A DNA stretch of 64,000 nt from positions 186,001 through 250,000 of the IMG/VR virus record IMGVR_UViG_3300042564_002819, one strand, 5' to 3'. The first letter of the stretch is position 1; the number at the start of each line of letters is the position of its first letter. This document shows positions 19,163 to 36,464 of the stretch, one piece after another. Position numbers and translations under genes: made by a program. The notes below the pieces were generated by a model. The model saw only the letters and a program-made list of their open reading frames with translations, made no database searches and had not been told where the DNA came from.

Positions 19163-20155
19163 ATGAGCATCGTGTCAGAAACAATATCCTCTTTTCTGCC
19201 GTCTAAGCGTAAACAAACGCCTAGTGGATGGTTGTCATTTAACGGTCCTTGTTGTGTACACAACGGTACTTCTGCTGATAACAGAATGCGGGCTGGTATT
19301 ATCGAAGAAGGTGAATCTGTATCCTACCACTGCTTTAACTGCGGATACAAAGCTTCGTGGCAACCCGGTCGACACATTTCTTTTAAACTAAAACAGTTAA
19401 TGATCTGGCTCGGTGTACCAGACGATGCTATTAACAAACTTGCAATAGAAGTTCTTAAAATTAACGAAGGTGTTGAAACACAGTATCGTTCAATTGAACT
19501 GCCAACTTTTGAAAGTGTTCCGTTACCAGAAAACGCTGTAAAAATACATGACGATCCCTGCGATGTTTCAACACAGTTAACCGAAGTTAAAGAATACATG
19601 TCCGGACGAAAACTCTGGATAGACGAAGGGTATGAATACTACTGGAGCTCTAGTTTAGCCTACAGAGATAGATTGATTATTCCTTTCTACTATGAAGGAA
19701 GAATTGTAGGGTGGACTGCTAGAACAGTAAAGTCTGATAAAAAACCAAAATACATTACAGAATCACAGCCGGGATTTGTTTTTAACTTAGATGAACAAAG
19801 ACCGCAAAAAGTATTTTGTATTGTAGTTGAAGGTCCTATTGACGCTATACACATAGACGGTGTTGCACTTATGCGGGCCGAAATAAACGATCAACAGGCA
19901 ATGTTAATTGATCGTTTAAACAGAGAAGTTATAGTGTTGCCCGACAGAGACAAAACAGGTGCAGCACTGATCGAACAAGCAATTGATCGCGGGTGGTCAG
20001 TATCTATGCCTGATTGGGCACCAGAAATCAAAGACGTAAATGATGCAGTTCTTAAATACGGTAGACTATATACACTGTATAGTATTGTTTCGGCAGCCGA
20101 AACATCTCCTTTAAAAATTAGATTGAGAGCGAAAAAATGGTACGTAAATTTGTAA
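19163..20155 (+). CDS. DNA primase (T4 gp61-like)
   Basis: Zn finger (CC.H...YHCFNCG), RLIIP, TOPRIM VEGPIDA, PDRD, KDVND; sigma70-like TTGACA...TAGTAT upstream. Confidence 0.9.
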   Translation: MSIVSETISSFLPSKRKQTPSGWLSFNGPCCVHNGTSADNRMRAGIIEEGESVSYHCFNCGYKASWQPGRHISFKLKQLMIWLGVPDDAINKLAIEVLKINEGVETQYRSIELPTFESVPLPENAVKIHDDPCDVSTQLTEVKEYMSGRKLWIDEGYEYYWSSSLAYRDRLIIPFYYEGRIVGWTARTVKSDKKPKYITESQPGFVFNLDEQRPQKVFCIVVEGPIDAIHIDGVALMRAEINDQQAMLIDRLNREVIVLPDRDKTGAALIEQAIDRGWSVSMPDWAPEIKDVNDAVLKYGRLYTLYSIVSAAETSPLKIRLRAKKWYVNL

Positions 20156-20253
20156 ACTTCGTAACTTGGCCTTATCGATATATTCGCGATGAGTTAGCTT
20201 TAAGAAAAAAAATTAAAGAATTGCGTAAACGTGATCCGTTCATATACAAATGA
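20137..20253 (+). CDS. small protein (38 aa, ...ELRKRDPFIYK) coupled to carbamoyltransferase
   Basis: Overlaps primase end and shares ATGA with 20250. Confidence 0.55.
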   Translation: MVRKFVNFVTWPYRYIRDELALRKKIKELRKRDPFIYK

Positions 20254-21734
20254 AAGTATGGGGTATTAGTGCAAACAGTCACGACGCTGCTCTGGCTGTT
20301 TTTGATAAAAACACACAAGGTAAACTAACACTGGAATTTGCTAGTCACAGTGAACGTTTCAGCGGAATAAAAAATGACCCGCACCTAAATGCTGAGATGA
20401 TTTCTTATGCAGCCAAAAACTATGGCAAACCAGATCGAGTAGTTTGGTATGAACAGCCTTTTAAAAAAACCATGCGACAATTTCTTGCCGGGCAAGGTTG
20501 GAATTATCAAGAAAACAATATACGAAAGTATTTGAAAAAATACAGCATAGATGCTCCTATTTCCTATGTGAGTCATCATCATGCCCACGCCGCAGCCGGT
20601 TATTATACCAGCCAGTTTGCTGATGCAACTATTATTGTGATAGACAGCATCGGCGAGTTTGAAACAATGACCATATGGGAAGCCGAAGGCACAACTCTTA
20701 AAAAGAAGTTTTCTCAAGGTTATCCTAACAGCATCGGATTGTGGTATAGTTCAATGACCGATCGTGTTGGTTTAAAAGCCAACGAAGACGAATATATCCT
20801 AATGGGCATGGCCGCATACGGAAATCCGTTAAAACATTATTGGGATATAACCGGAGACTTTTTTAAGTCATTTGGCAATGAATACGATATCAAAATCGAA
20901 TTTGCAAAAAATTTACACCGAGGTTGTAGAGATTGGCGTCCACAACTGAGAAGTCAACAAGACTATTTCAACATTGCTGCTGCTACTCAAGAAGTATATG
21001 AAGCACTGTTATTAAACATCAGCAGTTGGGCATTAAAAAATTGTAAATCAAAAAACCTAGTTCTCATGGGCGGATGTGCTTTAAACTGCAAAGCAAATTC
21101 TCGAATTAAAAACCATTGGGACAATGTATGGATAATGCCAAATCCGGGTGACGCTGGCAGTGCAATAGGTGCAGTGCTTGCACACTATAAACAACCTGTT
21201 GAATGGCCTGGACCTTATTTAGGATTCAACATCAATCGCCCTTACCCGGTTGACTCACTGATAAGAGAACTTAAAAGATCTGGCATAGCAGGTGTAGCCA
21301 ACGGTCGTGCTGAATTCGGCCCACGAGCTCTTGGCAATCGCAGCTTGCTTGCTGATCCACGCGGCCCTACCATCAAACATCGTGTAAACGAAATCAAAAG
21401 ACGTCAGCAGTTTAGACCTTTTGCTCCGGTTATACTGGCGGAGTTTGCTGAAGAGTATTTTAGTGGACCGGTCAGTTCTTATATGCAGTATACTGCCGTC
21501 TGCAAATTTCCGGATCAGTTTCCAGCTATTGTGCATCGAGATGGCACCAGTAGAGTGCAAACAGTTTCAGCAGCTGACAATTCTGGATTGAGACAACTGC
21601 TGGAACAGTGGTATGCAGAAACCGGCTGTCCTATGCTGCTAAACACCAGTTTGAATATCAAAGGACGACCTATGGTTAATACCTGGGAAGATGGCCAAAA
21701 ATTTGCTAGATATTATAATGTTAATGTTTATTGA
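20250..21734 (+). CDS. carbamoyltransferase (NodU/CmcH/TobZ family)
   Basis: HDAA, ERF...K, HH.AHA, GGCALN, PGDAG, EFGPRALGNRS, RPFAP, H.DGTSRVQ, LNTSLN. Confidence 0.95.
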   Translation: MKVWGISANSHDAALAVFDKNTQGKLTLEFASHSERFSGIKNDPHLNAEMISYAAKNYGKPDRVVWYEQPFKKTMRQFLAGQGWNYQENNIRKYLKKYSIDAPISYVSHHHAHAAAGYYTSQFADATIIVIDSIGEFETMTIWEAEGTTLKKKFSQGYPNSIGLWYSSMTDRVGLKANEDEYILMGMAAYGNPLKHYWDITGDFFKSFGNEYDIKIEFAKNLHRGCRDWRPQLRSQQDYFNIAAATQEVYEALLLNISSWALKNCKSKNLVLMGGCALNCKANSRIKNHWDNVWIMPNPGDAGSAIGAVLAHYKQPVEWPGPYLGFNINRPYPVDSLIRELKRSGIAGVANGRAEFGPRALGNRSLLADPRGPTIKHRVNEIKRRQQFRPFAPVILAEFAEEYFSGPVSSYMQYTAVCKFPDQFPAIVHRDGTSRVQTVSAADNSGLRQLLEQWYAETGCPMLLNTSLNIKGRPMVNTWEDGQKFARYYNVNVY

Positions 21735-21764: not shown

Positions 21765-23189
21765 ATGACAACAAGACAAAATACAGACTACGGTTACGAT
21801 ATACAAAAGCTTTATTTGGAAATGATGCTAACCGACGCCGAAACATTCATTAGGTGTCAGAGTGTGTTTGATTCAAACAATTTTGATAGACGTCTGCAAC
21901 CAGCAGCACGGTTCATCAACGACTATGTAACCGAACACAATGCTATGCCCACCTTTGACATGGTAAATGCAACCACCAAGTCAGGACTAAACAATCCTGG
22001 CGAATTGCAAGAAGAACACTACGACTGGTTGTTGATAGAATTCGAAACATTCAGTAGACACAAAGCACTGGAAGCAGCAATCTTAAAAAGTGCAGACCTG
22101 TTGGAAAAAGGCGAATACGGTCCAGTAGAAGATCTTGTAAAACGTGCAGTGCAGATTGGTTTGCAAAAAGATCTGGGCACAGACTATTTTCGTGATCCTC
22201 GCAAAAGACTAGAAGCGATCAAAGATAAAAACGGACAGGTAAGCACTGGTTGGGCCAGTCTTGATCAAAAACTATTTGGCGGCTTCAACAGAGGCGAACT
22301 CAATATTTTTGCTGGCGGTTCCGGTGCAGGCAAAAGTTTGTTCTTGGCAAATCTAGGAGTCAACTGGGCTCTGGCTGGAATGAACGTGCTGTATCTAACT
22401 TTCGAACTCTCAGAAAACCTAGTCAGTATGCGTATTGACAGTATGGTTACAGGTGTTCCCACACGTGACGTTTTTAAAAGCATTGATGACGTAGAAATGC
22501 GAGTCCGGATGATTGGCAAAAAATCCGGTGCTATGCAGGTCAAATACATGCCCACTGGTAAAACAGCCAATGACCTTAGATCTTATGTTAAAGAATATGA
22601 AATCAAAACTGGCAAAAAGATAGACGCAGTATTGGTAGACTATCTCGATCTTATGATGCCAGTTTCAGTTAAGGTATCACCAGAAAATCTGTTTATCAAA
22701 GACAAGTATGTAAGTGAAGAACTGCGTAACCTAGCAATGGAATTGAACACAGTGTTTGTTACTGCAAGTCAGCTCAACAGAGGTGCAGTTGAAGAAATTG
22801 AATTTGACCATAGCCACATTAGTGGCGGCTTAAGTAAGATTCAAACCGCAGACAACGTATTTGGTATCTTCACCAGCAGAGCCATGCGAGAACGTGGACG
22901 CTATCAGCTACAGCTAATGAAAACACGTAGCAGTAGTGGTGTTAACAGCAAAATTGATCTAGAGTTTGATGTGGACACACTGCGTATTTCAGATACCGAA
23001 CAGGAAGAAGATTCAGCTGGTGCAGCACCACAATCTGCAGGATCTGCAATAGTTTCTGCTCTCAAGAGAAACAACACAGTGAACACTGCCCCGGATCATC
23101 CGGATCGCGGCCAATCTATGCCAAAAGTCTCCGCTGAAGTTGACAGCACTAGATTGAGAAACTTCATCAACAATCTGGGCAGCGAATAA
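21765..23189 (+). CDS. DnaB-like replicative helicase (T4 gp41-like)
   Basis: GGSGAGKS Walker A, VDYLDLM, TASQLNR, KTR. Confidence 0.92.
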   Translation: MTTRQNTDYGYDIQKLYLEMMLTDAETFIRCQSVFDSNNFDRRLQPAARFINDYVTEHNAMPTFDMVNATTKSGLNNPGELQEEHYDWLLIEFETFSRHKALEAAILKSADLLEKGEYGPVEDLVKRAVQIGLQKDLGTDYFRDPRKRLEAIKDKNGQVSTGWASLDQKLFGGFNRGELNIFAGGSGAGKSLFLANLGVNWALAGMNVLYLTFELSENLVSMRIDSMVTGVPTRDVFKSIDDVEMRVRMIGKKSGAMQVKYMPTGKTANDLRSYVKEYEIKTGKKIDAVLVDYLDLMMPVSVKVSPENLFIKDKYVSEELRNLAMELNTVFVTASQLNRGAVEEIEFDHSHISGGLSKIQTADNVFGIFTSRAMRERGRYQLQLMKTRSSSGVNSKIDLEFDVDTLRISDTEQEEDSAGAAPQSAGSAIVSALKRNNTVNTAPDHPDRGQSMPKVSAEVDSTRLRNFINNLGSE

Positions 23190-24172: not shown

Positions 24173-24418
24173 CTAGTCTGCTGACTCTGCTGTTATTTGT
24201 ATACTGCTGTTATCCCAAGACAGCATAAACACTGTGATAGCACTGGCTCGACTGTGCTGTACTGTAAACTGTCTACGTCGATGAGGATTGTAGTAAGAGT
24301 CCACTGGAGGCAGCACGGTAAACCCATGTTTTAAAAATGTTTGTTTAGCATATTCAATGCTGATGTTTTGATCTGACCATATATTACGAATATGAATCTG
24401 AATGTTCCAAGTGTACAT
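24173..24418 (-). CDS. hypothetical protein, paralog of 23932..24171
   Basis: Tandem paralogy. Confidence 0.55.
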   Translation of the reverse strand: MYTWNIQIHIRNIWSDQNISIEYAKQTFLKHGFTVLPPVDSYYNPHRRRQFTVQHSRASAITVFMLSWDNSSIQITAESAD

Positions 24419-24474
24419 ACAAATAAACTAACACAAACGTAGAGCAAGGTCAACCTGCCCTACGGGCAGTACCG

Positions 24475-24760
24475 GTACCCCGGAGGGGTACTCGTATGAT
24501 AAAAAAATTTGCTGCAAAAAAAATTACAGGAGTACTTACAGTACCACGGTGGTCAGTTTTTGGCCCAAGGGGTTCCTGGGTTGTAAAAAAATTCTGCCGA
24601 GAAAATTTATATAGAAGTACTTACAGTTTCAGGGTGGTGATTCGGCAACCCCAGGTTTGGCGTAGCGTGGGGGAAAGATTTGGCTGCCGCTGCGTTAAAA
24701 ACTGTGTCAAGCATAAAACGCATACGACCCCCCCGAGAAAAAAATATTTTTTTTATTTTA
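24475..24760. repeat. noncoding block: GTACCCC/GGGGTAC hairpin, ~85-bp imperfect direct repeat with A-tracts, C7 run and A/T tract
   Basis: AGTACTTACAGT at 24531 and 24616, each preceded by AAAAAATT.TGC and followed by GGTGGT. Confidence 0.65.
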
Positions 24761-24829
24761 CTATACGACACTTGACAAAAGTATTTTTGTTAGTGCAAGC
24801 ACAGCACTTGCACTAACAGTTAGCTTATG

Positions 24830-25192
24830 TTACGCTGCGTGTTGTTGCTGTGCAACACTAGCGTTTTTGTATGCTTGCAACACTTGCAAAGCACTATGCA
24901 AGCAAAAATTAGTGTGTTGCTGTGCATACTTTTGTTTGCTTTGTGCAACAAGTATTGCAGCATTAATTGCGTGTTGCATGTTGTGCTGTGTTGCACATTT
25001 GCAAACATGTGCTGTGCAAGTGCAGCGTGTAGCATTGTTTGCTTGTGCAGCATAGTGCATGTTAAGCTGCATAAGTGCAACACTGTGCTGCACATAAGCT
25101 TTTGTTGCATTGTATTTGTAATAGTTAGCTTTTGCAGTGCTGTTATGCTGCGTTTGCTTTTTTGCGTAAGTGTTAAGCAAGTTGTTAAGCAT
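24830..25192 (-). CDS. early protein lacking Asp, Glu, Gly, Pro and Trp
   Basis: 120-aa ORF with promoter upstream and hairpin (24791-24815) downstream. Confidence 0.6.
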   Translation of the reverse strand: MLNNLLNTYAKKQTQHNSTAKANYYKYNATKAYVQHSVALMQLNMHYAAQANNATRCTCTAHVCKCATQHNMQHAINAAILVAQSKQKYAQQHTNFCLHSALQVLQAYKNASVAQQQHAA

Positions 25193-25229
25193 GTTGTGCT
25201 ACTTTGCTGTTTGTGTTGCTGTTACATAC

Positions 25230-25258
25230 TGTTTACAGTATTGCGTTAGCTAATGCAA
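25230..25258 (-). promoter_or_regulatory. sigma70-type promoter TTGCAT-N17-TAAACA
   Basis: 17-bp spacing; same architecture as other early promoters. Confidence 0.55.
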
Positions 25259-25336
25259 GTAAAATAACGCATAATAAAATTGCTTTATTAGTGCAAACAA
25301 CGCAATATTATTACGTGCTTTTTTTGCATTTTGTTG

Positions 25337-25365
25337 TTGCGTTTGCTGTGCTGTGCTGCTATACA
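25337..25365 (+). promoter_or_regulatory. sigma70-type promoter TTGCGT-N17-TATACA with extended -10 TG
   Basis: 17-bp spacing, upstream of 25403. Confidence 0.6.
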
Positions 25366-25402
25366 GTATGCATACAGCAACTAACAGCAAAGTGTAACAC
25401 AC

Positions 25403-25705
25403 ATGCAATACGCAAACTATGCTAGCGTTGTTAACGCTATTAACTGTTATGACGACACTGTGCTTCGTGAAGCACAGCAGCTTGCACTAGCTATAGCACA
25501 GCACAACGAAGACTACTGCACAGACAGCTTGTTTGACGCAGTTAACGAAAGCGTTGACGACTTGGGTATGCAAGCTTGTTGGCAGCACACGGAAATGCGT
25601 AGTGCAATTGAACAGTATAACGACGAGTGCTACAGCACAGCAATTTACGAGCTTGTAATTGCAATGCTAAAGCGTAGCTCAGCATACGAGCAAGCGTTTA
25701 CGTAA
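25403..25705 (+). CDS. acidic early protein, candidate Ocr-like DNA mimic
   Basis: ~16 D/E versus 4 K/R; TDSLFDAVNESVDD and AIYELV resemble T7 Ocr segments. Confidence 0.5.
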   Translation: MQYANYASVVNAINCYDDTVLREAQQLALAIAQHNEDYCTDSLFDAVNESVDDLGMQACWQHTEMRSAIEQYNDECYSTAIYELVIAMLKRSSAYEQAFT

Positions 25706-25730
25706 CGCAAGCTTTTAAAAAAAACAAGCA

Positions 25731-25754
25731 CAGTGCAAGTGTAAGCTTGCACTG
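25731..25754. terminator. AGTGCAAG/CTTGCACT hairpin between convergent genes
   Basis: CAGTGCAAG-N6-CTTGCACTG; family copies at 24791, 25829, 26099, 26515, 26786. Confidence 0.5.
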
Positions 25755-25864
25755 TGTCGTCGTTTGTGCAGTTTGTTATTTTGTTATTTTGTTATTTTGG
25801 GGCGGGCCGGGGGATAGAACTTGGGGTAGCTAGTGCAAGCATTACACTTGCACTGGCTGTTTTT

Positions 25865-26047
25865 TTACAGTTTGTTTATGCGGCGCAGGCAGTAGGCGAA
25901 TTGACGTGCAGGACGGGTGCGAGTGCTAATAGACATGCTGTTAGCATAGTATTCGTAAACTTCGTTATAAAGGGCTCCGGAGCTGTCAAGTTCTTTTGTT
26001 TGTTTGTATACTGCAAGTTCCTGCTTTGCTGCGTTGCTAAGTTCCAT
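25865..26047 (-). CDS. small early hypothetical protein
   Basis: AGGA SD; promoter TTGCAC-N17-TATACA at ~26080-26108. Confidence 0.55.
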   Translation of the reverse strand: MELSNAAKQELAVYKQTKELDSSGALYNEVYEYYANSMSISTRTRPARQFAYCLRRINKL

Positions 26048-26162
26048 TTTGCAGTTTCCTTTTTGCTGTTTGTTTGTATTGTATAGCAGCTTGTATTAGC
26101 TAGTGCAAGCATTATTTTACTTGCACTAGCAATTAACAGCGGGGCCTTAGTAGACCCGTTTG

Positions 26163-26462
26163 TTACAAAACACAGTATTCCGTTTGAGGAACAAGTTCGT
26201 TTTCCTCAATGTAACGCAACACGCTAACAAACTGCTCCCGCATGTCAGTGTCAAAATACACAATTGTCGTGTGCAGTTCAACAGCGTCGCTCGTTGCAAT
26301 AAACGAAGCAAGTGCGTCAGCAGCACGGGCAATGTCGTTTGCAAACATTGCAATGTGTTCCTGAGGAATTGCAGTTGCAAAATAGTTTTGCGTGTAAGCT
26401 GCAATAGCGTCACGCATTGCTTTTACAGTGTAAAACTTACGCAGCACAGTCATTTTACGCAT
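26163..26462 (-). CDS. early hypothetical protein
   Basis: GAGGG SD; promoter TTGCAC-N17-TATACA at ~26496-26524. Confidence 0.6.
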   Translation of the reverse strand: MRKMTVLRKFYTVKAMRDAIAAYTQNYFATAIPQEHIAMFANDIARAADALASFIATSDAVELHTTIVYFDTDMREQFVSVLRYIEENELVPQTEYCVL

Positions 26463-26553
26463 TGTGTATTCCCTCTATGCGTTGCTTATGTGTACTGTAT
26501 AGCAGACAGTGTCGGCTAGTGCAAGCACAAAATGCACTTGCACCGGCAGTTTT

Positions 26554-26733
26554 TTAGTCTTGCAATTGCAATTGCAATGTGTTAAGCTTTTGCAGTGCAG
26601 CGTCTTCTTCTGCTAGTGCAAGCTTATAAACTGCATAGCTGCCGCCTTGCATAGCTTCTGCTCGGCACTGTGCAGTAAGTGCTACAGCGTTTGCGTAACG
26701 CTTTTGTGCATTAGCAAGTTTTTTGTTTTGCAT
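26554..26733 (-). CDS. small early protein (59 aa, MQNKKLANAQKRY...)
   Basis: GGAG SD; promoter TTGCAC-N17-TATAAA; below ORF-track cutoff. Confidence 0.55.
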   Translation of the reverse strand: MQNKKLANAQKRYANAVALTAQCRAEAMQGGSYAVYKLALAEEDAALQKLNTLQLQLQD

Positions 26734-26828
26734 AGCGTGTGCTCCGTTTTGCTACGTTATGCGTTGTTTATAGCAGCTTGTGTCTGCTAGTGCAAGCATT
26801 ATTTTACTTGCACTAGCAGTTTTTTGTG

Positions 26829-27020
26829 TTACGCTTCGTCTGCGTCTTCCTCAATTTGCTCCAACATAGCCGTAATGTCGTAGCCAACCGTCTGCATTGC
26901 AATAACAATCTGTTTCGCTGCTTCGTATGCATCCCAGCTTTGCACTTCGTCAGCATCCGTGCTGTCGTATGCATTAGCAGCAATTTGTGCAATGTTAGCA
27001 AACAGTTCTTCGCGTGTCAT
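26829..27020 (-). CDS. small acidic early protein
   Basis: GAGGG SD; TTGACA-N17-TATACA promoter. Confidence 0.6.
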   Translation of the reverse strand: MTREELFANIAQIAANAYDSTDADEVQSWDAYEAAKQIVIAMQTVGYDITAMLEQIEEDADEA

Positions 27021-27110
27021 GTGCAGTCCCTCTTGTGTTGCCCTATGTGTTATGTATAGCACAGCACACAGCACTTGTCAAGTAAAAAGTGCTGTGTGCT
27101 GCAAGTTTTT

Positions 27111-27377
27111 TTAAATATTACACGCTATAAGTGCTTCGTCAAGCATGTCGTGTACTGCACTGTCGTACGCATAGTTATACTCCGTAGCAAAATCCACGTC
27201 GCTGCTGCACATAATTGTGTCATATTTGTTAATGTTATACTGTTTAAATGCAGCAATTATGTCGTTTGCACTATTACAAAAAACGTCAACAGTTTTATTA
27301 ATACGCAGTACAATTGCGTTTGTAGCGTCGTCAAGCATTACAAAAACGTAATTAGTATTTGCTACAGTGTTTTGCAT
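27111..27377 (-). CDS. early protein (no Gly, Pro or Trp)
   Basis: GAGGAG SD; TTGCAA-N16-TATAAC promoter. Confidence 0.6.
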   Translation of the reverse strand: MQNTVANTNYVFVMLDDATNAIVLRINKTVDVFCNSANDIIAAFKQYNINKYDTIMCSSDVDFATEYNYAYDSAVHDMLDEALIACNI

Positions 27378-27504
27378 ATTGTGCTCCTCGCATATGCTGT
27401 GTTGCTTACAAATACAGTTATACACTATGCAGCACAGTTTGCAAGTAACGTTTTGTTACAGTTTTAGTGCGTGTTGTAACAATACGTTATCTCCTACCTC
27501 TGCC

Positions 27505-27852
27505 TCACTCTACACCCCAGCCACAGTATTTCTTCCCACGCACAATATCAAAAAACTCTGCACCTGCAACCGCACCAATCCAGTCGTAAATGTAGTCTCG
27601 TGCTGCCGTGTCCATCTCCCACAGCCGGTCTTCAACCAATCGCCAATCACCTTCGGCTAGCAGCACACAAACATCAAGCCCAGCACTGGCATCTCCCAAC
27701 AGCATAGCTCGCATAGAACGATCCGCTGCCCAACGCTCCTGGTCCGTCCGCATCTTTTCCATTACCAGCAGTTCCACTTGAAGTGCAAGTTCCTGCCAGT
27801 TGATGTGGACAGTGCCGGTAAGAGTGGGTTCATTTACAGTTACGATAGACAT
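27505..27852 (-). CDS. early hypothetical protein
   Basis: GAGG SD; TTGACC-N17-TATACA promoter. Confidence 0.6.
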   Translation of the reverse strand: MSIVTVNEPTLTGTVHINWQELALQVELLVMEKMRTDQERWAADRSMRAMLLGDASAGLDVCVLLAEGDWRLVEDRLWEMDTAARDYIYDWIGAVAGAEFFDIVRGKKYCGWGVE

Positions 27853-27900
27853 CTGTTTGTCCTCTGTGTTGCTGTCTGTTGTATGCTGTATACAGTGTTT

Positions 27901-28074
27901 TCAGCTTGGGGTCAACCCCAAACGATCGTTTAGGATTGAATTGATTTTACGGAGGATCATGTCTTTGATGCATGGCGGCGCAGGATCGTCCTCCAGCAGC
28001 ATAATTGCATCCAGCAGTTGCATATCCGTGCAGGCCTCAAGACGAGCCAGTTCTTCAGCCATTTCTTTTTGCAT
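27901..28074 (-). CDS. small early protein (57 aa)
   Basis: AGGAG SD; TTGCAT-N17-TATAAC promoter. Confidence 0.5.
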   Translation of the reverse strand: MQKEMAEELARLEACTDMQLLDAIMLLEDDPAPPCIKDMILRKINSILNDRLGLTPS

Positions 28075-28132
28075 TGCAGTTTCTCCTGTGCTGTGCCGTT
28101 GTTATACAGACTGTAGGAGCCGAATGCAACCG

Positions 28133-28405
28133 TTATTTTCGCCGGCCTGGGAACTGAATTACTGTGGCAGATTCTGCCACATCTGCTGGCATCAGATCAC
28201 TATACAGCGGGGCCGAATCCAGTGTATAGTCTTCAACAGCCATCAGTTGTGCTGTAACATCAAATACCGTTTCCAGGTTCTCTGGGTAGCTGTCGGTACC
28301 GTATGAGTCGATGGCTGTGTTGACCGCAGCACGTAGAGCTCGCAGCACAATCTCAGGTGCAGTGTAGCTCTCAAGAATTCTTCGCAGTTGTTCAGTAGGG
28401 TCCAC
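28133..28405 (-). CDS. acidic hypothetical protein
   Basis: AAGGA SD, GTG start. Confidence 0.55.
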   Translation of the reverse strand: MDPTEQLRRILESYTAPEIVLRALRAAVNTAIDSYGTDSYPENLETVFDVTAQLMAVEDYTLDSAPLYSDLMPADVAESATVIQFPGRRK

Positions 28406-28462
28406 AATCTGTTTCCTTGGGTTGGAGGTGTTCGCCTACTGTGGGCGAACACCCATTGTTGA

Positions 28463-28807
28463 TTAGTCCAGACGCGAGCCAGCGTAGGCAGTGAAGCCAT
28501 AACGCTTCAGCACTTCTGCGGCAGCACGAGCACCAGCTTCTTTGGTTTCGATGTTTTGTGCACCGTGACGGCTTGGGTTCCAGCATTCGTAAGCCTTGCC
28601 GGTCCAGTCTTTGCGGAAGCCCAGAGCTTCGATATCGCGACGTTCAATCTTACCATCGCGGGTGTTGCCCTTGTGCTTGGGATAGATCGTAACCCAAGCA
28701 AAGCCACACATGCCGCGGTCTACTCCGCCCATTTGTTCAGCAAAGAACTGGTTGGCAGCATCACGGGCAGCAGTTTCAAACTCTTCGCGGATTGCAGTGG
28801 TGTCCAT
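28463..28807 (-). CDS. phage protein (CGFAWV motif)
   Basis: AAGGAG SD; own promoter. Confidence 0.65.
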   Translation of the reverse strand: MDTTAIREEFETAARDAANQFFAEQMGGVDRGMCGFAWVTIYPKHKGNTRDGKIERRDIEALGFRKDWTGKAYECWNPSRHGAQNIETKEAGARAAAEVLKRYGFTAYAGSRLD

Positions 28808-28931
28808 CAGTGGTCTCCTTGTTTGCTCTATGCCTAATGTATAGCAGATCACAGTCTCGGGGTCAACAGGAAAAATAACCCGCACAATCAGATTGTGCAA
28901 ACCGTTTCGCATATCGTATACAGCGGGGCCA

Positions 28932-29237
28932 TCAGTTGTGGTAGGTCTTGGTTACGCGGAGAACTTCGCCATAGCAGTTGATCTCGTAGAGGTATGTCCA
29001 ATGACGACGATATTCAACTTCCTGACGGCATACACGGTAAGGATCTGGCTCTTGGTAATAAACCACAGGCGGCGGATATTCGGTTTGTGGATACACCACC
29101 TGCGGGCGTGGCGCCTTGAGTGCATCTACTACGATTGCACCCACAATGAATCCGCCGAGGATCTTTTCGAAGTCACCTGCGTGAACGGGTGCAGCAAATC
29201 CCAGTGCCACCATTGAGGCAAGAATCATTTTACGCAT
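28932..29237 (-). CDS. secreted or membrane hypothetical protein
   Basis: Signal peptide (VHA), glycine-zipper-like segment. Confidence 0.6.
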   Translation of the reverse strand: MRKMILASMVALGFAAPVHAGDFEKILGGFIVGAIVVDALKAPRPQVVYPQTEYPPPVVYYQEPDPYRVCRQEVEYRRHWTYLYEINCYGEVLRVTKTYHN

Positions 29238-29272
29238 GTTCGGTCTCCTTGTATGCTCTTACAGTATATATC

Positions 29273-29476
29273 TTAAGAGCAGATGTCAACCCTCTTTGAA
29301 CGAGCAAACCTAATTAGATCTCTGTCGACGGAGGTCAATCTTTGGACATCGTATCCAAAAGGTGTATTGACACTTTCCAATCGAGCTGCTAAGTTGGCTG
29401 CGGCATTAGCAATGGTGTCGTTCGAGGAATTCTCAGCTAGGTCTCTGAGATCTTGCATTATACTGTATAAGGTCAT
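29273..29476 (-). CDS. hypothetical protein
   Basis: ORF in early array. Confidence 0.45.
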   Translation of the reverse strand: MTLYSIMQDLRDLAENSSNDTIANAAANLAARLESVNTPFGYDVQRLTSVDRDLIRFARSKRVDICS

Positions 29477-29526
29477 TTTCTTCTTTTTGTTGACGGGCAG
29501 TTTAGTGTCTTGCCCAGGACACCGTC

Positions 29527-29700
29527 TCATTCGAGAGGTTCAGTGCAGTCGCAGTCCACAAACTCGTAGCGGCCTGCGTCAATCTTGGCTAGCCATTTGC
29601 CAAATCCTGTAGGATCTTCCAGTGCAATAATCAGTAGCACTATCGTAAACAACAGGAAAAAGCTCAGCAGCATATCGCGGATGTCGGCAAAAACGTTCAT
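29527..29700 (-). CDS. small membrane protein (57 aa)
   Basis: One hydrophobic helix; overlaps stop of upstream gene. Confidence 0.45.
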   Translation of the reverse strand: MNVFADIRDMLLSFFLLFTIVLLIIALEDPTGFGKWLAKIDAGRYEFVDCDCTEPLE

Positions 29701-29876
29701 TGGCATTCCTCTAGATTATAGTGTTCACAGTCAGCAAGGTACTCAGGATCCAATTGGGAAGCTAGGAAATTTTCGTGTGCAGCCCGGTCGGCCAATGCTT
29801 CGGCCGGTGAAGTTAATACAGGTACGTCGCCACAAGCAGCTAACGTCAGTGCGGAAATCAACATCATCCACTTCAT
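29697..29876 (-). CDS. small lipoprotein
   Basis: MKWMMLISALTLAAC lipobox; own promoter. Confidence 0.55.
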   Translation of the reverse strand: MKWMMLISALTLAACGDVPVLTSPAEALADRAAHENFLASQLDPEYLADCEHYNLEECQ

Positions 29877-29939
29877 CTGCAGGGCCCTTTCTCTTGCTCT
29901 GTATCTTTTTATAGCATCAAGCGACACTGAGGTCAACCA

Positions 29940-30308
29940 TTACCAGACGTGAATAGAAAGACTTTCTGTGTTGTGTTTCCAGTTCATTTCTTTGCCGCCT
30001 GCTGATTCAATGCTTTTGCGGAATGCCGTGCTGTCACGACGGCTCTTAAGCACATACCGTTGAACTTTGACTTCGGTGTGTGCAGGACGACGCTTGGTTG
30101 CAGGACGTGCAGTTTCATAGACTGCACCGTAGCTGGCAAAGTAGTCCTTGACACAGTCAACAACAGCGGCTACGGCTGTTTGGTGTGCAAACGATCCAAA
30201 CACATCCGGATGACGGTCCATGGCTGCTTCTGCACGACGATTGATGTCTTCGATAGCAAACCAACTGGAGCCGACACTGTGTGTCTCTTTGGTTTCTTCC
30301 TTAATCAT
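29940..30308 (-). CDS. hypothetical protein
   Basis: AGGAG SD. Confidence 0.55.
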   Translation of the reverse strand: MIKEETKETHSVGSSWFAIEDINRRAEAAMDRHPDVFGSFAHQTAVAAVVDCVKDYFASYGAVYETARPATKRRPAHTEVKVQRYVLKSRRDSTAFRKSIESAGGKEMNWKHNTESLSIHVW

Positions 30309-30588
30309 AGTAATCTCCTACTAAGATGTATGTTGCAGGTGCACATTCTTCATTATCATTAGCATAGAGCAATCCGTCCTCGCGGTCAAGGAAAAAGTCC
30401 TTGCTTTCAGGATCGATATCATCTACATCAACGAATTCAACCTGGCCGAGATAGGCAAAATCGTCGAGGCACCCGCAGCTTTGAACAAAGCGATACACTC
30501 CAGGCTTATCAACAGTCTTGCCGATAATATCACTGGCTTCTCTCTGCGAGAATTCGTTGAGGTAGTCGATGCTGACTTTAATCATCAC
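30301..30588 (-). CDS. acidic hypothetical protein
   Basis: Coupled ORF. Confidence 0.55.
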   Translation of the reverse strand: MMIKVSIDYLNEFSQREASDIIGKTVDKPGVYRFVQSCGCLDDFAYLGQVEFVDVDDIDPESKDFFLDREDGLLYANDNEECAPATYILVGDYYD

Positions 30589-30728
30589 AGCTCTCCCTTG
30601 CGATGCTTTTGTTTGCGGGTGTATTTGGTTTTGTCACGCACAGTGCGGACGCGGAACTGAGGTGTGGCAAGTTCACGTGCAACAGGGTTGCGACGCTGAA
30701 TGTCTTCTGCACGGATTTGGATTTTCAT
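30585..30728 (-). CDS. ArfA-like small basic protein (47 aa)
   Basis: NPVARELATPQFRVR...KYTRKQKH; GAGGAG SD; own promoter. Confidence 0.55.
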   Translation of the reverse strand: MKIQIRAEDIQRRNPVARELATPQFRVRTVRDKTKYTRKQKHRKGEL

Positions 30729-30773
30729 CGTGTTGCTCCTCGTTTGCCCTATACCGTTTATATAGCATTGAGT

Positions 30774-30980
30774 TCAGTTGGTGTCAACCATTATCTTCTC
30801 AAGTTCGTCGACGTGATACATATAGCGTTGGCGAGTCTTGAACCTTTTATCAAGCCGCACACGAAGCCAACCTTCAACAAAGCCTTCATCTTCAACAGTG
30901 CCCAACAGGCCCTGGGTGGGACGAAGTGCTGGAGCACGGACCTTCACACGGTCTCCAATTTGGATTGTCATCTCTTTCAA
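30774..30980 (-). CDS. small SH3-like protein
   Basis: IGDRVKV...GTV...VRLD. Confidence 0.45.
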   Translation of the reverse strand: MKEMTIQIGDRVKVRAPALRPTQGLLGTVEDEGFVEGWLRVRLDKRFKTRQRYMYHVDELEKIMVDTN

Positions 30981-30983
30981 CCT

Positions 30984-31241
30984 CTATTTGAACTCTACTC
31001 TAACCAAATCGCCTTGTGGATTGAACATGGTGCAGACTCTGTTGCCCACCGCCTTGACAGTGGTACGAGTTTGCCACCACAGTTCGGCTTCTGCCTCAGT
31101 GTCTACCAACACCGCATTCCACTCCAACGGTCCACCAGGATTATCTGCTGGTGGTTTGGAGAACTGTGTTCTTACTTGCCACATCTGAATTCTCCGTGTT
31201 GCCCTATGCTCGGTTATAGCATAGGGCAAGGGTGGTGTCAA
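30984..31241 (-). CDS. hypothetical protein (true start may be downstream)
   Basis: ORF; a promoter lies within its annotated 5' part. Confidence 0.45.
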   Translation of the reverse strand: MTPPLPYAITEHRATRRIQMWQVRTQFSKPPADNPGGPLEWNAVLVDTEAEAELWWQTRTTVKAVGNRVCTMFNPQGDLVRVEFK

Positions 31242-31825
31242 CCTCTGTCTGTGTAGAAGATGTGATTGTCGATACGCACCACACGTTCAAAACTCTTGGC
31301 CCAAGTGGGCTTGACAGATGCAGCGTGGAAGTAGGTCGCTCCCTCAGTGGGATCACGTTCTACTCCGTATGACTGTAGGACTTCTTCTGCAACGACTTGT
31401 GCAGTTGCCCAAGCGGCTTGGTCCTTAGGTCTATCGCTCTTGCCATCGTGTGTCCAGGAGAACTGTTGATCTTCCCACACTACAGCACAGATGGTATCGG
31501 GGAAGTCCGAGTCCATTACTCTGTTGAGTGTAACCCAGCCTACAAACTCCTGTCCTACCTTGCTCTCGCCACGAGATTCAAAATAGACATTCAGTGCTAG
31601 GCAGTGTCGGTCTTCTTTGCTGACCTCAGCAAAGATGGCTTCGGGATCAGGGCGTGGCTGCATAGGTACAGGCACATGAACAATCCGTTCTACCACTCTG
31701 TCGATATACACTACTTCTTTGGGTTCGACGGCCGCTTTTGCCTCATCTGCCGTCAAGTAAACCACTGCCATTGCAACGATCACGGCTGAAGAAGCAACGC
31801 CGCCGATGATGGTACTCATCCTCAT
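31238..31825 (-). CDS. cell wall hydrolase (SleB/Hydrolase_2 family)
   Basis: CLALNVYFESRGE, V.LNRV, FP.TIC.VV, QFSW, GATYFH, I.NHIFY; N-terminal anchor. Confidence 0.9.
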   Translation of the reverse strand: MRMSTIIGGVASSAVIVAMAVVYLTADEAKAAVEPKEVVYIDRVVERIVHVPVPMQPRPDPEAIFAEVSKEDRHCLALNVYFESRGESKVGQEFVGWVTLNRVMDSDFPDTICAVVWEDQQFSWTHDGKSDRPKDQAAWATAQVVAEEVLQSYGVERDPTEGATYFHAASVKPTWAKSFERVVRIDNHIFYTDRG

Positions 31826-31947
31826 TGGATTCTCCTTTTTGTCGTTCGTGTAATAGTTATACTGGTATTGCTCGGAGTAGTCAACGTATATAATAGGAGT
31901 CAGCGAGATCTTGCTGGTTCCTAAGCAGGTTCTTGCTTAGCCTAGAA

Positions 31948-32406
31948 TCAGAAGTTAGGCTCGTAGTCACCGAACTCTTTATGCGTCAGCATCACTTGTT
32001 TATACAGTTGCGCCGCAGTAAGCCCACGATGCAGTCGTGCTAGACGGCTCATCGCAACTTGAATACGCTCGTCTGTGGGCTCTACAAAGCCGTCGTCGTC
32101 CGCTGCTACAGCCGTCTGTGCAGGCTTTACAGCACGTTCTTTGGCTGCTTTAGGCTTAGGTGCAGCGGCAGGCTCTCGGGCTGCTACACGCTGCAACAGT
32201 GCTCGTGCATCAGGTGTGCAAAAGGGCGACTCCAGCAAGTGTGCAGCGGCTGCCTCTCGAGTCATTGCAGTGGGCAGCTGGATCAACTGGATGTCAGTGT
32301 TCTCGCAGCGTTCCAGCATAGCAATACGACCCGCAAGATCGTTTGCAACACGGAACTTAAGCTCACCATTTTCCTTGCTAGTGCCAGCAACAGTGAAAGT
32401 CTTCAT
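31948..32406 (-). CDS. phage protein, paralog of 33678..34145
   Basis: TFTVAG.S..NG..K.R.AN...R..ML......I....LP.AMT..AA..HL. Confidence 0.65.
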   Translation of the reverse strand: MKTFTVAGTSKENGELKFRVANDLAGRIAMLERCENTDIQLIQLPTAMTREAAAAHLLESPFCTPDARALLQRVAAREPAAAPKPKAAKERAVKPAQTAVAADDDGFVEPTDERIQVAMSRLARLHRGLTAAQLYKQVMLTHKEFGDYEPNF

Positions 32407-32417
32407 CTTGCATCTCC

Positions 32418-32540
32418 TTAGTCTGCATACTGAGCGTTGAACAATGCTGCCTTGAAGGTGCCACCGTGAACAATCTTGTTGTCTGCTAGGCGTTTGCCGA
32501 ACCAAACATTACCTGCATTCCAGAACGTCCAACCTTCCAT
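32418..32540 (-). CDS. small hypothetical protein (40 aa)
   Basis: RBS block identical to that of the next gene; own promoter. Confidence 0.45.
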   Translation of the reverse strand: MEGWTFWNAGNVWFGKRLADNKIVHGGTFKAALFNAQYAD

Positions 32541-32641
32541 CTTGCATCTCCTTGCGTTATGCACTGTGTATAGCAGAATCTTTCTGCCAGTGCAAGAGAA
32601 TAATTCCTCTTGATCCGGTGAGTTGTTTGTGTTATACAACT

Positions 32642-32745
32642 TGTGAGGCCGGAGAGTTCCGTACGGGAGGGCACGGAGCCCTGAACCTATGGTTTAATCA
32701 TTAAACCATTCAGTCAAGGGGAAAGGGTGCATTGCTGCACCCTTG
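32642..32745 (+). ncRNA. candidate small structured RNA, copy 1
   Basis: TTGATC-N17-TATACA promoter, GTGAGGCC start, CTGAACCTATGGTTTAATCATTAAACCA hairpin, terminator-like stem 32722-32743; related copy at 41020. Confidence 0.45.
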
Positions 32746-32752
32746 TTCTCGT

Positions 32753-33022
32753 TCACATCTGCCAATAAGCTTCGCTTGCGGGCGACATGTAGTTGGGCGT
32801 ATTCACCGACTCCATGTATGACTGTCCAGTCATCAAGTTAGTGCGTTCTACTTGACGCTCGATGTTGTCTTGGAAGTAGGTGTATTCAGCAACCGCATAG
32901 TCGTTCCAGTTCAGGTAGCGTGTCACATGACGCTTTGCTGCCTGCTCAGTTGCAAAGAACTCGTCGCCGTTTGCACGACGTGCGGTACGAGTAGTATCTT
33001 TACGGTAAACCACATAAGCCAT
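32753..33022 (-). CDS. phage hypothetical protein
   Basis: AAGGAG SD; NLMTG..Y.E..NTP....P.SE.YW C-terminus. Confidence 0.65.
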   Translation of the reverse strand: MAYVVYRKDTTRTARRANGDEFFATEQAAKRHVTRYLNWNDYAVAEYTYFQDNIERQVERTNLMTGQSYMESVNTPNYMSPASEAYWQM

Positions 33023-33084
33023 TGTGTCTCTCCTTGTTGCTTACAGTTACACAATATAGAAAAAGCGATAAGGGGTCAAGCCCC

Positions 33085-33588: not shown

Positions 33589-33677
33589 TGCGTAGTCCTT
33601 TCTGTTTGTCTATGCTCTAGTTATAGCACCTAAGAGAAAGCGGTGCAAGCGTTATTTTGCCTGTACCGCCATTTTTT

Positions 33678-36420: not shown

Positions 36421-36464
36421 ATTATTGTATCTTAAGCTGAGCTACGGAACCAGCAAAAGAAGTT

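Follow-up and report, generated by a model that had tools for sequence, protein, structure and literature searches.

Putative early genes of an uncultured jumbo phage and its relatives are written without pyrimidine-cytosine steps on the message strand

A block of probably first-expressed genes in an uncultured jumbo phage, and in about 20 related phage contigs, was found to be written in such a way that the message strand contains no or hardly any TC or CC (together 5′-YC-3′) and the encoded proteins contain almost no proline, which looks like a built-in immunity of the first transcription units of the phage to something that acts on these two-letter steps. The block was identified in a stretch of 64,000 nucleotides (positions 186,001 to 250,000 of the 330-kb IMG/VR record IMGVR_UViG_3300042564_002819), which is referred to as the window in the following and to which all coordinates refer unless a relative is named. 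The rule is strand-specific and follows transcription units: the RNA-like strand of each small gene, its leader and its intergenic putative promoter lacks YC, and the template correspondingly lacks 5′-GR-3′ (GA, GG), whereas GA and GG are kept on the sense strand where Asp, Glu, Gly and Shine-Dalgarno sites require them.

The starting point was an earlier note made from the sequence alone, which described a 677-bp stretch at 24775-25451 without any GA, GG, TC or CC, and this observation was confirmed. The stretch (A168 C114 G148 T247) contains none of the four dinucleotides, whereas its base composition predicts 36.7 + 32.3 + 41.5 + 19.2 = 129.7, in accordance with the estimate of about 130 given in the note. 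Every other 500-bp window of the 64 kb holds 62-126 of these dinucleotides, and in 80 helicase-anchored related loci the longest run free of all four is usually 30-60 bp. A TRF search found only three tiny arrays, so the stretch is not repetitive. More precisely, the + strand is GR-free at 24775-25451 and YC-free at 24734-25465. The two genes described in the note, a 120-aa ORF and the start of a second gene, are present, and neither has a GGAG-type Shine-Dalgarno site. The two divergent promoters with 17-bp spacing are likewise readable, although they fall below the threshold of a consensus scan and rest on the repeated architecture, which is seen five more times in the zone. The weaker depletion claimed to extend to about 27490 is true, but is better described as strand-specific, since the + strand at 26665-27627 has no GA/GG but many TC/CC because the genes there lie on the - strand. 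An assembly artefact can be ruled out, as the same property recurs in about 20 independent contigs and an 88%-identical homologous zone exists in the related contig L084.

The core at 24775-25451 is free of the four dinucleotides on both strands. Within it, orf120 (24830-25192, - strand) encodes 120 aa with no D, E, G, P or W. It has no Shine-Dalgarno site and is preceded by the conserved leader ..ACAGCAAAGTAGCACAAC-ATG (25193-25215), which also precedes the neighboring gene g1 and ORFs in the related contigs L094 and L142. A simulation of synonymous codon choice expects 7.8 GR and 19 YC in this gene, while none of either is observed. Its putative promoter, TTGCAT(25258-25253)-N17-TAAACA(25235-25230) on the - strand, belongs to a repeat family (D1) and is inferred from sequence only. 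At the 3′ end of orf120, a hairpin with a 13-bp stem (24789-24815; -19 kcal/mol, z -3.4) carries in its right arm, read on the + strand, TTGCAC-N17-TACGCT, which belongs to the repeats of the zone (D17/I9) and might represent an antisense promoter. In the opposite direction, the putative promoter TTGCGT(25337-25342)-N17-TATACA(25360-25365) on the + strand precedes g1 (25403-25705, +), which encodes an acidic protein of 100 aa without Pro behind an SD-less leader. Its sense strand contains 2 YC (2 TC and 0 CC; 13 expected) and 20 GR, of which 18 are forced by the amino acids. The terminator hairpin of g1 is located at 25728-25757 (+), and the YC-free run on the + strand ends at its 3′ edge.

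The adjacent stretch between the two convergent units (25758-26150) is unconstrained. It holds a G-rich tract and a decayed small ORF (25865-26047, -; 15 YC against 10.8 expected), and all four dinucleotides are present. At 26137-26146 (-) lies a copy of the conserved motif GGCCCCGCTG, which marks the downstream end of the leftward unit. The only recurrent YC inside the zones examined is a conserved functional 10-mer. The genes g3-g6 lie on the - strand. Of these, g3 (26163-26462; 99 aa, 2 Pro) is only partly purged, with 9 YC against 18.8 expected. Its putative promoter is TTGCAC(26524-26519)-N17-TATACA(26501-26496), and L084 has a homologue at 75% nucleotide identity. The gene g4 (26554-26733; 59 aa, no Pro) contains 1 YC (7.9 expected), and its putative promoter TTGCAC(26795-26790)-N17-TATAAA(26772-26767) lies inside a hairpin with a 15-bp stem. 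The gene g5 (26829-27020) encodes a very acidic protein of 63 aa and contains 0 YC (8.2 expected), while GR is not avoided (27 against 24 expected). Its putative promoter TTGACA(27081-27076)-N17-TATACA(27058-27053) is found in the loop and arm of a 16-bp hairpin. The gene g6 (27111-27377; 88 aa, no Pro, 0 YC against 11.4 expected) belongs to the most widespread family of zone proteins, with 10 aligned members, and is preceded by the putative promoter TTGCAA(27444-27439)-N16-TATAAC(27422-27417). The longest one-strand run spans 963 bp (26665-27627) with no GA/GG on the + strand, meaning no YC on the - (sense) strand, and runs 120 nt into the 3′ end of the upstream normal gene 27505-27852.

About 20 related uncultured jumbo-phage contigs contain zones of 0.5-3.6 kb with different genes, so that the property is conserved while the gene content is not and protein families are shuffled. 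The cultured relative PA5oct has no such zone. Across 77 zone ORFs in 14 contigs, sense YC is at the minimum the protein allows in 56. It amounts to 0-2 per gene where 8-26 are expected, and proline makes up 16 of 7094 residues (0.2% against about 4%), whereas flanking genes are normal. The orientation of the constraint flips with the gene (g1 on the + strand against g3-g6 on the - strand), the constraint stops at terminators, and spacers read as non-transcribed are left untouched (25757-26150 in the window; about 6737-6806 in L142). It is also on-going, since of 57 substitutions between the window and L084 in a shared zone none creates a YC (P about 2e-7), while 14 create a GR. The pattern is one of recoding rather than decay: YC falls from 7.2% to 0.6% while AC+GC rises from 13.5% to 17.4%, C falls only from 20.7% to 17.9%, and TT+CT barely rises, from 11.8% to 12.7%. 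Ser is moved to AGY codons, and Phe, Ile, Val, Ala and Thr drop their C-ending codons. In addition, a weaker second tier avoids sense GA but not GG: the sense G|A codon junction is at 0.28 of expectation (flanks 0.90) and AGA/CGA are reduced, whereas G|G is unchanged (0.70 against 0.76). A few genes, termed class 2 here and including orf120, lack all four dinucleotides and encode proteins without D, E, G, P or W behind a leader with no Shine-Dalgarno site. Comparisons of the zone proteins with Pfam, PHROG and PDB and fold searches yielded no matches and thus gave no hint on function.

The interpretation offered in the earlier note, namely that the phage either modifies G in GR (or C in YC) and keeps its first-expressed genes unmodified for the host RNA polymerase, or that a first-injected end is purged of host-defence targets, is only partly supported by these data. 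The purge is real, extreme and selective, it covers a cluster of small genes with sigma-70-type promoters (as inferred from sequence) that look like first-expressed genes, the remaining GA sits mostly in Asp/Glu codons, and the cited context of DpdA in phage CAjan, GA/GGC and first reported as GRH, is correct (PMC7544227). However, the statement that every G is followed by a pyrimidine on both strands holds only for the 677-bp core and similar cores, the general rule being one strand per transcription unit.

We tentatively consider the zone to be an immediate-early cassette of the host-takeover type, consisting of small, mostly acidic genes of unknown function, each with its own sigma-70-type promoter, in which each transcription unit (promoter, leader, ORF and intergenic hairpin) has been recoded so that the RNA-like strand carries no YC. 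In this view, the recoding confers cis-encoded immunity to a single-hit agent whose harm depends on the orientation relative to transcription and which prefers the TC/GA step over CC/GG. The most likely agent would be an enzyme acting at pyrimidine-C steps on single-stranded nucleic acid exposed by transcription, which could be the displaced non-template DNA strand and possibly the mRNA, and it could be a dC-directed nuclease, a deaminase or a base-modifying transferase that is present before the phage has made any protein. Genes written this way could be expressed anyway, and their products would then presumably neutralise the agent or take over the host, so that the rest of the genome would not need the dialect, whereas the fully purged cores would be units where both strands matter. 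While the composition rule, its strand specificity, its limits at transcription-unit boundaries, its maintenance during divergence and its spread in the clade follow directly from the sequences, the early timing and expression of the genes, the promoters, the single-hit logic, and the nature and origin of the agent are inferences, with the early timing resting on promoter and gene architecture only. The absolute absence over 1-2 kb at the cost of proline argues for an agent where one site matters, and the second tier fits one DNA-directed agent with TC>CC preference that hits the less exposed strand more weakly, but not a pure RNA reader.

Nevertheless, several findings do not sit easily with this reading. 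No candidate enzyme was seen in the window, and neighboring genes with the same promoter type, for example 4095-4517 in the related contig L081, are not purged. A lesion on the non-template strand does not obviously stop expression, so that the harm would have to come through breaks, mutation or later replication. The YC-free run also covers first-promoter spacers and up to 120-175 nt upstream, which neither strand exposure nor an RNA reader predicts simply, and the class-2 genes without D, E, G or W are not explained by it. A bolder reading, which is not excluded but appears unlikely, is that these phages use a two-dialect genome as a takeover device: the phage itself would deliver or very early make a low-specificity nuclease acting at pyrimidine-C steps on RNA and/or single-stranded DNA, which would wipe out host messages and transcribed host DNA, while the first operon of the phage would be written in a YC-free dialect the nuclease cannot read and a later product would switch the nuclease off. 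The class-2 genes would then be the part that must work under the harshest conditions.

Among the alternatives, evasion of the host termination factor Rho appears possible but less likely. The primary binding sites of Rho hold 5′-YC dinucleotides of nascent RNA (PMC12360218), so that transcripts without any YC could not load Rho and immediate-early RNAs would be completed before the phage makes an antiterminator or a Rho inhibitor. In line with this, the purged set is exactly YC on the RNA-like strand while RC cytosines are kept and even increased, leaders and intergenic RNA are included, and phages counter Rho in trans with lambda N and Q and with P4 Psu (PMC12360218). The zone transcripts offer no YC ligands to the Rho primary binding site. 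However, Rho binding is multivalent, so isolated YCs should be nearly neutral, yet the count is zero over 1-2 kb and proline is given up. Furthermore, the C-minus-G skew of the zones (-3.0 points) equals that of the flanks (-3.5), the translated ORFs have strong Shine-Dalgarno sites and should be shielded by ribosomes, this reading presupposes a host with Rho, and neither the sense GA avoidance nor the class-2 genes are predicted. The latter two observations also speak against a YC-specific endoribonuclease, be it a host toxin, an abortive-infection RNase or a phage shut-off RNase, which we consider unlikely. Such an RNase would be a single-hit agent acting on the RNA-like strand, dinucleotide-specific RNases exist (colicin E5 at GpU, the dinucleotide preferences of Cas13 orthologues), and the purge covers leaders and intergenic RNA and ends at terminators. 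Still, it gives no reason for first-promoter spacers to be YC-free, read-through from zone genes runs into YC-rich downstream genes in L081, and no RNase of this specificity is known. A passive footprint of transcription-linked C-to-U editing at YC is very unlikely. The TC/CC context and the bias to the non-transcribed strand resemble APOBEC-type footprints and the GC content drops in the zones, but the products TT+CT rise by only 0.9 points against a loss of 6.6 points of YC, RC cytosines increase, Ser is moved to AGY, and boundaries are sharp at neighboring genes with the same promoter type.

The two ideas of the earlier note fit less well than the reading favored here. If the phage modified G in GR context (DpdA-like, GA>GG) or C in YC, and modified bases in the template were harmful because of the unmodified host RNA polymerase or a modification-dependent host nuclease or glycosylase, the first genes might keep a modification-free template strand. 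The template strand lacks exactly GR, known DpdA motifs are GA, GA+GGC and GRH (PMC7544227; PMC10484667), and GA>GG matches the second tier. In the clade, 6-mer palindromes lacking GR/YC are slightly more under-represented than those containing it (median 0.83 against 0.93-0.96, p 0.05-0.08), which is not so in PA5oct. The replication module of the window also carries a carbamoyltransferase (20250-21734) of the family shown to make 5-carbamoyloxymethyl-C (PMC8670742), so some DNA hypermodification is plausible, although this family showed no sequence-context preference. On the other hand, CAjan, with mapped GA/GGC dPreQ0, has no comparable zone (longest GR- or YC-free run 112 bp; lowest 500-bp window 26 GR), so such a modification does not itself require one. 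Searches with the CAjan proteins (tblastn) of the window and of about 2.3 Mb of clade loci, which sample only two neighborhoods of each genome and about 20% of the genome studied here, found no DpdA, FolE, QueC or QueE homologue and only one marginal QueD hit in the distant contig L140, and Pfam scans of 30 window proteins found none either. Moreover, 7-deazaguanines keep Watson-Crick pairing, and late genes with GR in the template must still be transcribed. This reading is therefore unlikely, yet not excluded. A first-entering DNA end purged of restriction sites, PAMs or Dnd/Ssp motifs is very unlikely. Purging YC from one strand does remove every palindromic site containing GA, GG, TC or CC, such as GATC, GANTC, CCGG and GGCC (GATC and TCGA are at 0 in the zone), and the contigs of three relatives (L097, L107, L111) start within 0.5 kb of a zone. 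However, the constraint is set per transcription unit and per strand, it leaves spacers between units untouched, PAMs and asymmetric sites can lie on either strand while sense GR is plentiful and free to change, and TGCA (79 copies, ratio 1.0), AGCT (0.88) and CTAG (1.21) are not avoided in the zone. In addition, the zone is internal in the 330-kb contig, and its place relative to conserved genes differs between relatives.

If the favored reading is right, this would be the first phage case we know of in which a whole dinucleotide class is excluded from the message strand of one operon, strongly enough to remove an amino acid from its proteins, and our literature searches found no report of it. 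It would point to an unrecognised, very early, low-specificity attack on transcribed phage nucleic acid and would give a purely sequence-based way to find, in uncultured phage genomes, both the immediate-early genes, which are likely counter-defence genes, and the specificity of whatever they must survive. The YC-free dialect could also be useful for building transcripts that resist the same factor. If the agent turned out to be Rho, the zones would be a natural demonstration that YC dinucleotides alone decide Rho loading in vivo.

Several known systems share individual features with these zones. Rho utilisation involves the same dinucleotide and the same strand, the nascent RNA, and early phage transcription is a known target of Rho (PMC12360218), but the known phage answers are trans-acting proteins or RNA elements rather than rut-free coding, and the zero tolerance, the unchanged C-G skew and the GA avoidance are not expected. 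DpdA-dependent 7-deazaguanine modification (GA/GGC in CAjan, GA in iggy) shares the DNA context of G followed by a purine with GA preferred, whereas no pathway genes, apart from the marginal QueD hit, were found in the DNA examined and CAjan itself has no unmodifiable zone. Immediate-early or host-takeover modules, such as the T4 immediate-early genes, the SPO1 host-takeover module, T7 class I and the PA5oct early genes in the terminal repeat, likewise are runs of small ORFs of unknown function, each with a strong host-type promoter and Shine-Dalgarno site and with hairpins between the genes, and PA5oct uses host RNA polymerase with TTGAC/TATAATA promoters (PMC7318152). In our zones, a cluster of small ORFs, each with a putative host-type promoter and its own translation start, is indeed found, but none of these modules is reported to exclude a dinucleotide, and the 39-kb early terminal repeat of PA5oct shows no zone. 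In restriction-site avoidance, as in T5 first-step-transfer DNA without EcoRI sites, words are also removed from first-used DNA so that counter-defence genes can be expressed, but those cases concern specific 4-8-bp sites on double-stranded DNA, symmetric on both strands, whereas here a whole dinucleotide class is removed from one strand per transcription unit. T4 endonuclease IV (DenB), a dC-specific ssDNA endonuclease cutting 5′-T^C, is an enzyme of the postulated kind, being single-strand specific, directed at cytosine and preferring TC, yet it is a phage enzyme aimed at unmodified host DNA and is named here as a lead only. Finally, dinucleotide suppression in animal viruses (CpG against ZAP, UpA against RNase L, TC/CC against APOBEC3) also removes a two-letter word, at synonymous sites and beyond, to escape a host factor that reads it, and APOBEC footprints involve TC/CC and are biased to the non-transcribed strand. 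Here, however, the removal takes place in a phage, is absolute rather than statistical, is limited to one gene cassette, costs an amino acid and leaves no excess of the editing products.

The 64-kb window is part of a 330,024-bp IMG/VR contig of an uncultured jumbo phage (IMGVR_UViG_3300042564_002819; the related contig L083 is 100% identical). Its DnaB-type helicase (21765-23189) is about 52% identical to those of Pseudomonas phage PA5oct and Agrobacterium phage Atu_ph07. Left of the zone lie a helicase, a primase, a NodU/CmcH-type carbamoyltransferase and, at 1878-8743 and 14294-16256, a sugar and LPS-type gene set comprising CmcI-like and class-I methyltransferases, GT25 and GT8 glycosyltransferases, a cytidylyltransferase/cupin protein, KdsA and KdsB homologues (KDO-8-P synthase, DAHP_synth_1, and CMP-KDO synthetase, CTP_transf_3) and an OmpA-domain protein. 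Right of it lie many small leftward genes, an AAA ATPase (35057-36055), three tRNAs (36344-36630) and virion genes; apart from these three tRNAs, Rfam and tRNA scans returned nothing. G+C content changes stepwise across the zone, from about 30-45% on the left (about 1-24000) to about 45-54% on the right (27500-41000), which suggests that the zone sits at a junction of two differently composed genome modules. Neither blastn of the zone nor tblastn of g6, one of its leftward genes, revealed any similarity to deposited phages.

The observation of the earlier note that 24775-25451 contains no GA, GG, TC or CC was confirmed. Base composition predicts 129.7 such dinucleotides for this stretch, and every other 500-bp window of the 64 kb contains 62-126. 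Repeats or low complexity could be ruled out as the cause, since TRF found only three tiny arrays, and an assembly artefact is excluded by the occurrence of the same property in independent contigs and by an 88%-identical homologue. However, when the positions of each dinucleotide were listed, the rule outside the core proved to be strand-specific. From 26665 to 27627 the + strand has no GA or GG but plenty of TC and CC; the genes there are on the - strand, so that their sense strand lacks TC and CC (hereafter YC, with GA and GG as GR). Conversely, gene 25403-25705 on the + strand (g1) has 2 TC and 0 CC but 20 GA/GG. Each gene was compared with the minimum count its protein allows, obtained by dynamic programming, and with random synonymous coding using the codon usage of the rest of the window. 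By that test g1, g4, g5 and g6 have 2, 1, 0 and 0 YC where 13, 8, 8 and 11 are expected, and they have no proline, whereas flanking genes are normal.

The rule recurs in related phages. Loci anchored on the helicase showed one relative, on two contigs (L061/L081 and L082), with a 2,078-bp run that has no GA/GG on the strand opposite six small genes. Anchoring on the AAA ATPase gave many more: the related contigs L084, L085, L088, L091, L094, L097, L101, L104, L107, L108/L110, L111, L112, L133/L145 and L142 carry zones of 0.5-3.6 kb, with single YC-free runs of up to 1,722 bp, usually a few kb upstream of the AAA gene, and L002 adds a 590-bp GR-free run. In ordinary DNA of these loci the longest such runs are about 150-250 bp. 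In every zone examined in detail, the YC-free strand is the one carrying ORFs with Shine-Dalgarno sites and normal acidic residues, while ORFs on the other strand lack D, E and G and are spurious. Over 77 zone ORFs (7,094 residues) proline occurs 16 times, and the YC excess index is exactly 0 in 56 ORFs. The gene families are shuffled between phages and, by tblastx, no zone gene of L061/L081 matches a zone gene of the window, although the flanks are syntenic, so the property is conserved while the gene content is not. In contrast, no zone was found in 130 kb of the cultured relative PA5oct, including its 39-kb early terminal repeat and the region next to the AAA homologue. In the more distant 372-kb relative L133/L145, which has many short zones free of all four dinucleotides, a tandem array of GCATAGCAAGC-type units (20044-20798) lies on both sides of a copy of GGCCCCGCTG and is free of all four because of its repetition.

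The constraint is current and selective. A 617-bp zone segment is shared with L084 at 88% identity, and of its 57 substitutions none creates a YC, although 24% of random changes would (P about 2e-7), whereas 14 create a GR, which is the random expectation. YC falls from 7.2% to 0.6% of dinucleotides while AC+GC rises from 13.5% to 17.4%, C falls only from 20.7% to 17.9%, and TT+CT barely moves. Ser is coded by AGY, the codons TTC, ATC, GTC, GCC, ACC and CTC almost disappear, and NAC codons are preferred over NAT. This is recoding, not C-to-T decay.

The limits of the constraint follow transcription units. In the window, g1 (rightward) and g6-g3 (leftward) converge; the + strand YC-free run ends at the 3′ edge of the terminator hairpin of g1 (25728-25757), the leftward run ends 12 nt after the stop of g3, at a conserved motif, and the 390 bp between them are unconstrained. 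Similarly, in L142 the roughly 70 bp between two divergent zone promoters are unconstrained. Each zone gene has a promoter-like TTG(A/C)NN-N17-TATANN element, which in the window sits in or next to a long hairpin; these elements were read from the sequence by us, and the TTGCAC-type boxes of the window are below the threshold of the consensus scan. The first such promoter of each zone examined has no YC in its spacer (0 in 12 promoters), while several promoters of the same type just outside the zones do, and the YC-free run reaches 110-175 nt upstream of some first promoters, into the end of a normal gene. Long perfect hairpins with 13-16 bp stems (z -3.3 to -7.4 as RNA; 26099-26131, 26785-26817, 27050-27090, 24789-24815 and 25728-25757) overlap the -35 boxes of zone promoters, two of them being identical 32-mers 687 bp apart, and could be RNase III-type processing sites, terminators or operator cruciforms. 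Next to the core, a 370-bp non-coding stretch (24400-24775) has two related units of about 90 bp (A-runs, AGTACTTACAGT, G/C-rich hairpins such as GTACCCCGGAGGGGTAC) and a C7 run, and part of it (24583-24668) is conserved in L084 and the related contig L087 at 81-84% identity.

Inside the zones examined, the only recurrent YC is a strand-specific 10-mer, GGCCCCGCTG followed by (C/T)TA. It occurs 8 times exactly in the window, always on the - strand (26137-26146, 28205-28214, 28921-28930, 35836-35845, 41862-41871, 41921-41930, 42323-42332 and 43003-43012), and a search allowing one mismatch finds 10 where chance gives about 1. With 25 related loci included, there are 63 distinct contexts. The 10-mer is mostly intergenic, 10-60 nt before start codons, and often forms tandem pairs 40-60 nt apart in long non-coding regions upstream of the zones. 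It is probably a phage-specific promoter, perhaps middle or late, or a regulatory site, possibly of the antitermination type.

In addition to the absence of YC, GR is partly avoided on the sense strand (median index 0.40, range 0 to about 2). The G|A codon junction is at 0.28 of expectation, against 0.90 in the flanks, and AGA and CGA codons are reduced, whereas G|G is unchanged (0.70 against 0.76) and GGA and GGG codons are not avoided. The GA/TC step is hence avoided in both orientations, and absolutely when TC is on the RNA-like strand, while the GG/CC step is avoided only when CC is on that strand. Codon optimization was rejected as the cause of GA avoidance, since the G|A junction is specifically depleted while G|T and G|G are not.

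A few genes, here called class-2 genes, go to the extreme: orf120 of the window, a 172-aa ORF in L094, and ORFs in L142, L133, L088, L101 and L091. They lack all four dinucleotides, and their proteins have no, or almost no, D, E, G, P or W. In the window, L094 and L142 these genes use a conserved leader without a Shine-Dalgarno site, ..ACAGCAAAGT(A/G)..A..ATG, which is also used by g1. In the form ..AAC-AGCAAAGT-(A/G)..A.., with ATG 7-10 nt after the motif, it was found at 25378-25402 (+) and 25193-25215 (-) of the window, at 8736, 13015 and 13628 of L094 and at 6899 of L142, in front of zone genes that cannot have GGAG, which suggests an alternative way of starting translation. The conserved leader argues that orf120 is a real gene, and it also explains the 677-bp core of the earlier note as one class-2 gene plus two promoter regions. 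Bidirectional transcription was considered as a reason for the full purge of this core, and a possible antisense promoter, inferred from sequence alone, exists at 24806-24840.

Searches for a function of the zone proteins using PHROGs, Pfam and PDB profiles, two AlphaFold models (pLDDT 79 and 73) and Foldseek gave nothing significant. As for the host, the most widespread zone family, A1, which includes g6, has no hit in GTDB genomes. Homologues of the AAA ATPase occur in MAGs labelled Neomarinimicrobiota, Flavobacteriaceae, Ignavibacteriales and Crocinitomicaceae, but these are probably mis-binned phage contigs, and the sigma-70-type promoters and GGAG sites argue against Bacteroidota; the promoters suggest proteobacterial hosts. 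Among them, a 335-kb contig filed in GTDB under a Candidatus Neomarinimicrobiota MAG (L166; PBPT01000016.1, 335,231 bp) encodes a 65%-identical AAA homologue and is probably a mis-binned complete jumbo-phage genome of this clade, and a 5.9-kb contig in a Flavobacteriaceae MAG (L167; PKDU01000070.1) carries YC-free runs of up to 428 bp.

Regarding the mechanism, a symmetric dsDNA target is excluded, since synonymous GR on the sense strand is tolerated or only partly avoided, while YC is never tolerated. The absolute absence, at the price of proline, points to an agent for which one site matters. This fits poorly with multivalent loading of Rho, although the primary binding site of Rho is the one well-documented reader of 5′-YC (PMC12360218), and the C-G skew does not differ from the flanks. 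Moreover, GA avoidance on the sense strand is not predicted by any pure RNA reader of YC, whereas it is predicted by one DNA-directed agent with TC>CC (equivalently GA>GG) preference, if its effect is severe in one orientation relative to transcription and mild in the other. Two versions of such an agent remain: either C at YC on the displaced non-template strand is hit by an ssDNA-specific nuclease, deaminase or transferase, or G at GR on the template is modified or attacked. The latter corresponds to the first idea of the earlier note, namely that the phage modifies G in GR context and keeps its first-expressed genes unmodified. Its best-known chemistry is DpdA, with GA, GA/GGC or GRH motifs, but this does not require a motif-free zone in phage CAjan, and no pathway gene was found in the DNA examined (the window and about 20 kb around two anchor genes per related contig), apart from one marginal QueD hit in the distant related contig L140. 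Two weak hints keep it alive. Palindromes containing GR/YC are a little less avoided in the clade than those without, some of which are strongly avoided: GCGC is at 0.22 of expectation in the window outside the zone, and in relatives (loci L001-L126) ACGCGT is found 0 times where 9.5 are expected, GTGCAC is at 0.19, AGCGCT at 0.21 and GCGCGC at 0.23, while GATC is not avoided (1.08-1.26). Furthermore, the carbamoyltransferase (20250-21734, +; Pfam Carbam_trans_N/C, phrog_1601), which sits between the primase and the helicase and is also present in L061, belongs to a family that includes the 5hmC carbamoyltransferase making 5-carbamoyloxymethylcytosine in metavirome phages (PMC8670742). The clade may have hypermodified cytosine, although the enzyme that makes 5-carbamoyloxymethylcytosine showed no context preference and no dCMP hydroxymethylase was seen in the window.

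Other causes were considered as well. UV damage was rejected because the template strand keeps TT, CT, TC and CC dipyrimidines and sense AA is enriched. Guanine oxidation hot spots (5′-G of GG or GA) on the template would fit the dinucleotides, but UV lesions should matter more and are not avoided, which makes this explanation unlikely. Keeping Shine-Dalgarno sites unpaired by removing CUCC-like words could help translation but cannot explain zero YC over kilobases. All these observations lead us to favor, if only tentatively, cis-immunity of an immediate-early cassette against a strand-oriented, single-hit agent with TC>CC preference, for which an ssDNA/RNA-directed enzyme appears the most likely kind. 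The composition rule, its strand specificity, its limits and its recurrence are shown by the sequences, whereas the promoters, the early expression, the single-hit logic and the nature of the agent are inferred. This reading does not account for the fact that neighboring genes with the same promoter type are not purged, for the extension of the YC-free run upstream of some first promoters, or for the class-2 proteins. Rho evasion is considered unlikely but ranks next, a YC-specific RNase and a modification made by the phage itself appear still less likely, and restriction avoidance at the entry end, the second idea of the earlier note, as well as a passive mutational footprint are very doubtful. 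The interpretation given in the earlier note is only partly supported.

Our literature searches found no report of such zones. The closest known phenomenon is the suppression of dinucleotides by animal viruses; in phages, and in this absolute, operon-limited and strand-specific form, the exclusion of a dinucleotide class appears to be new.
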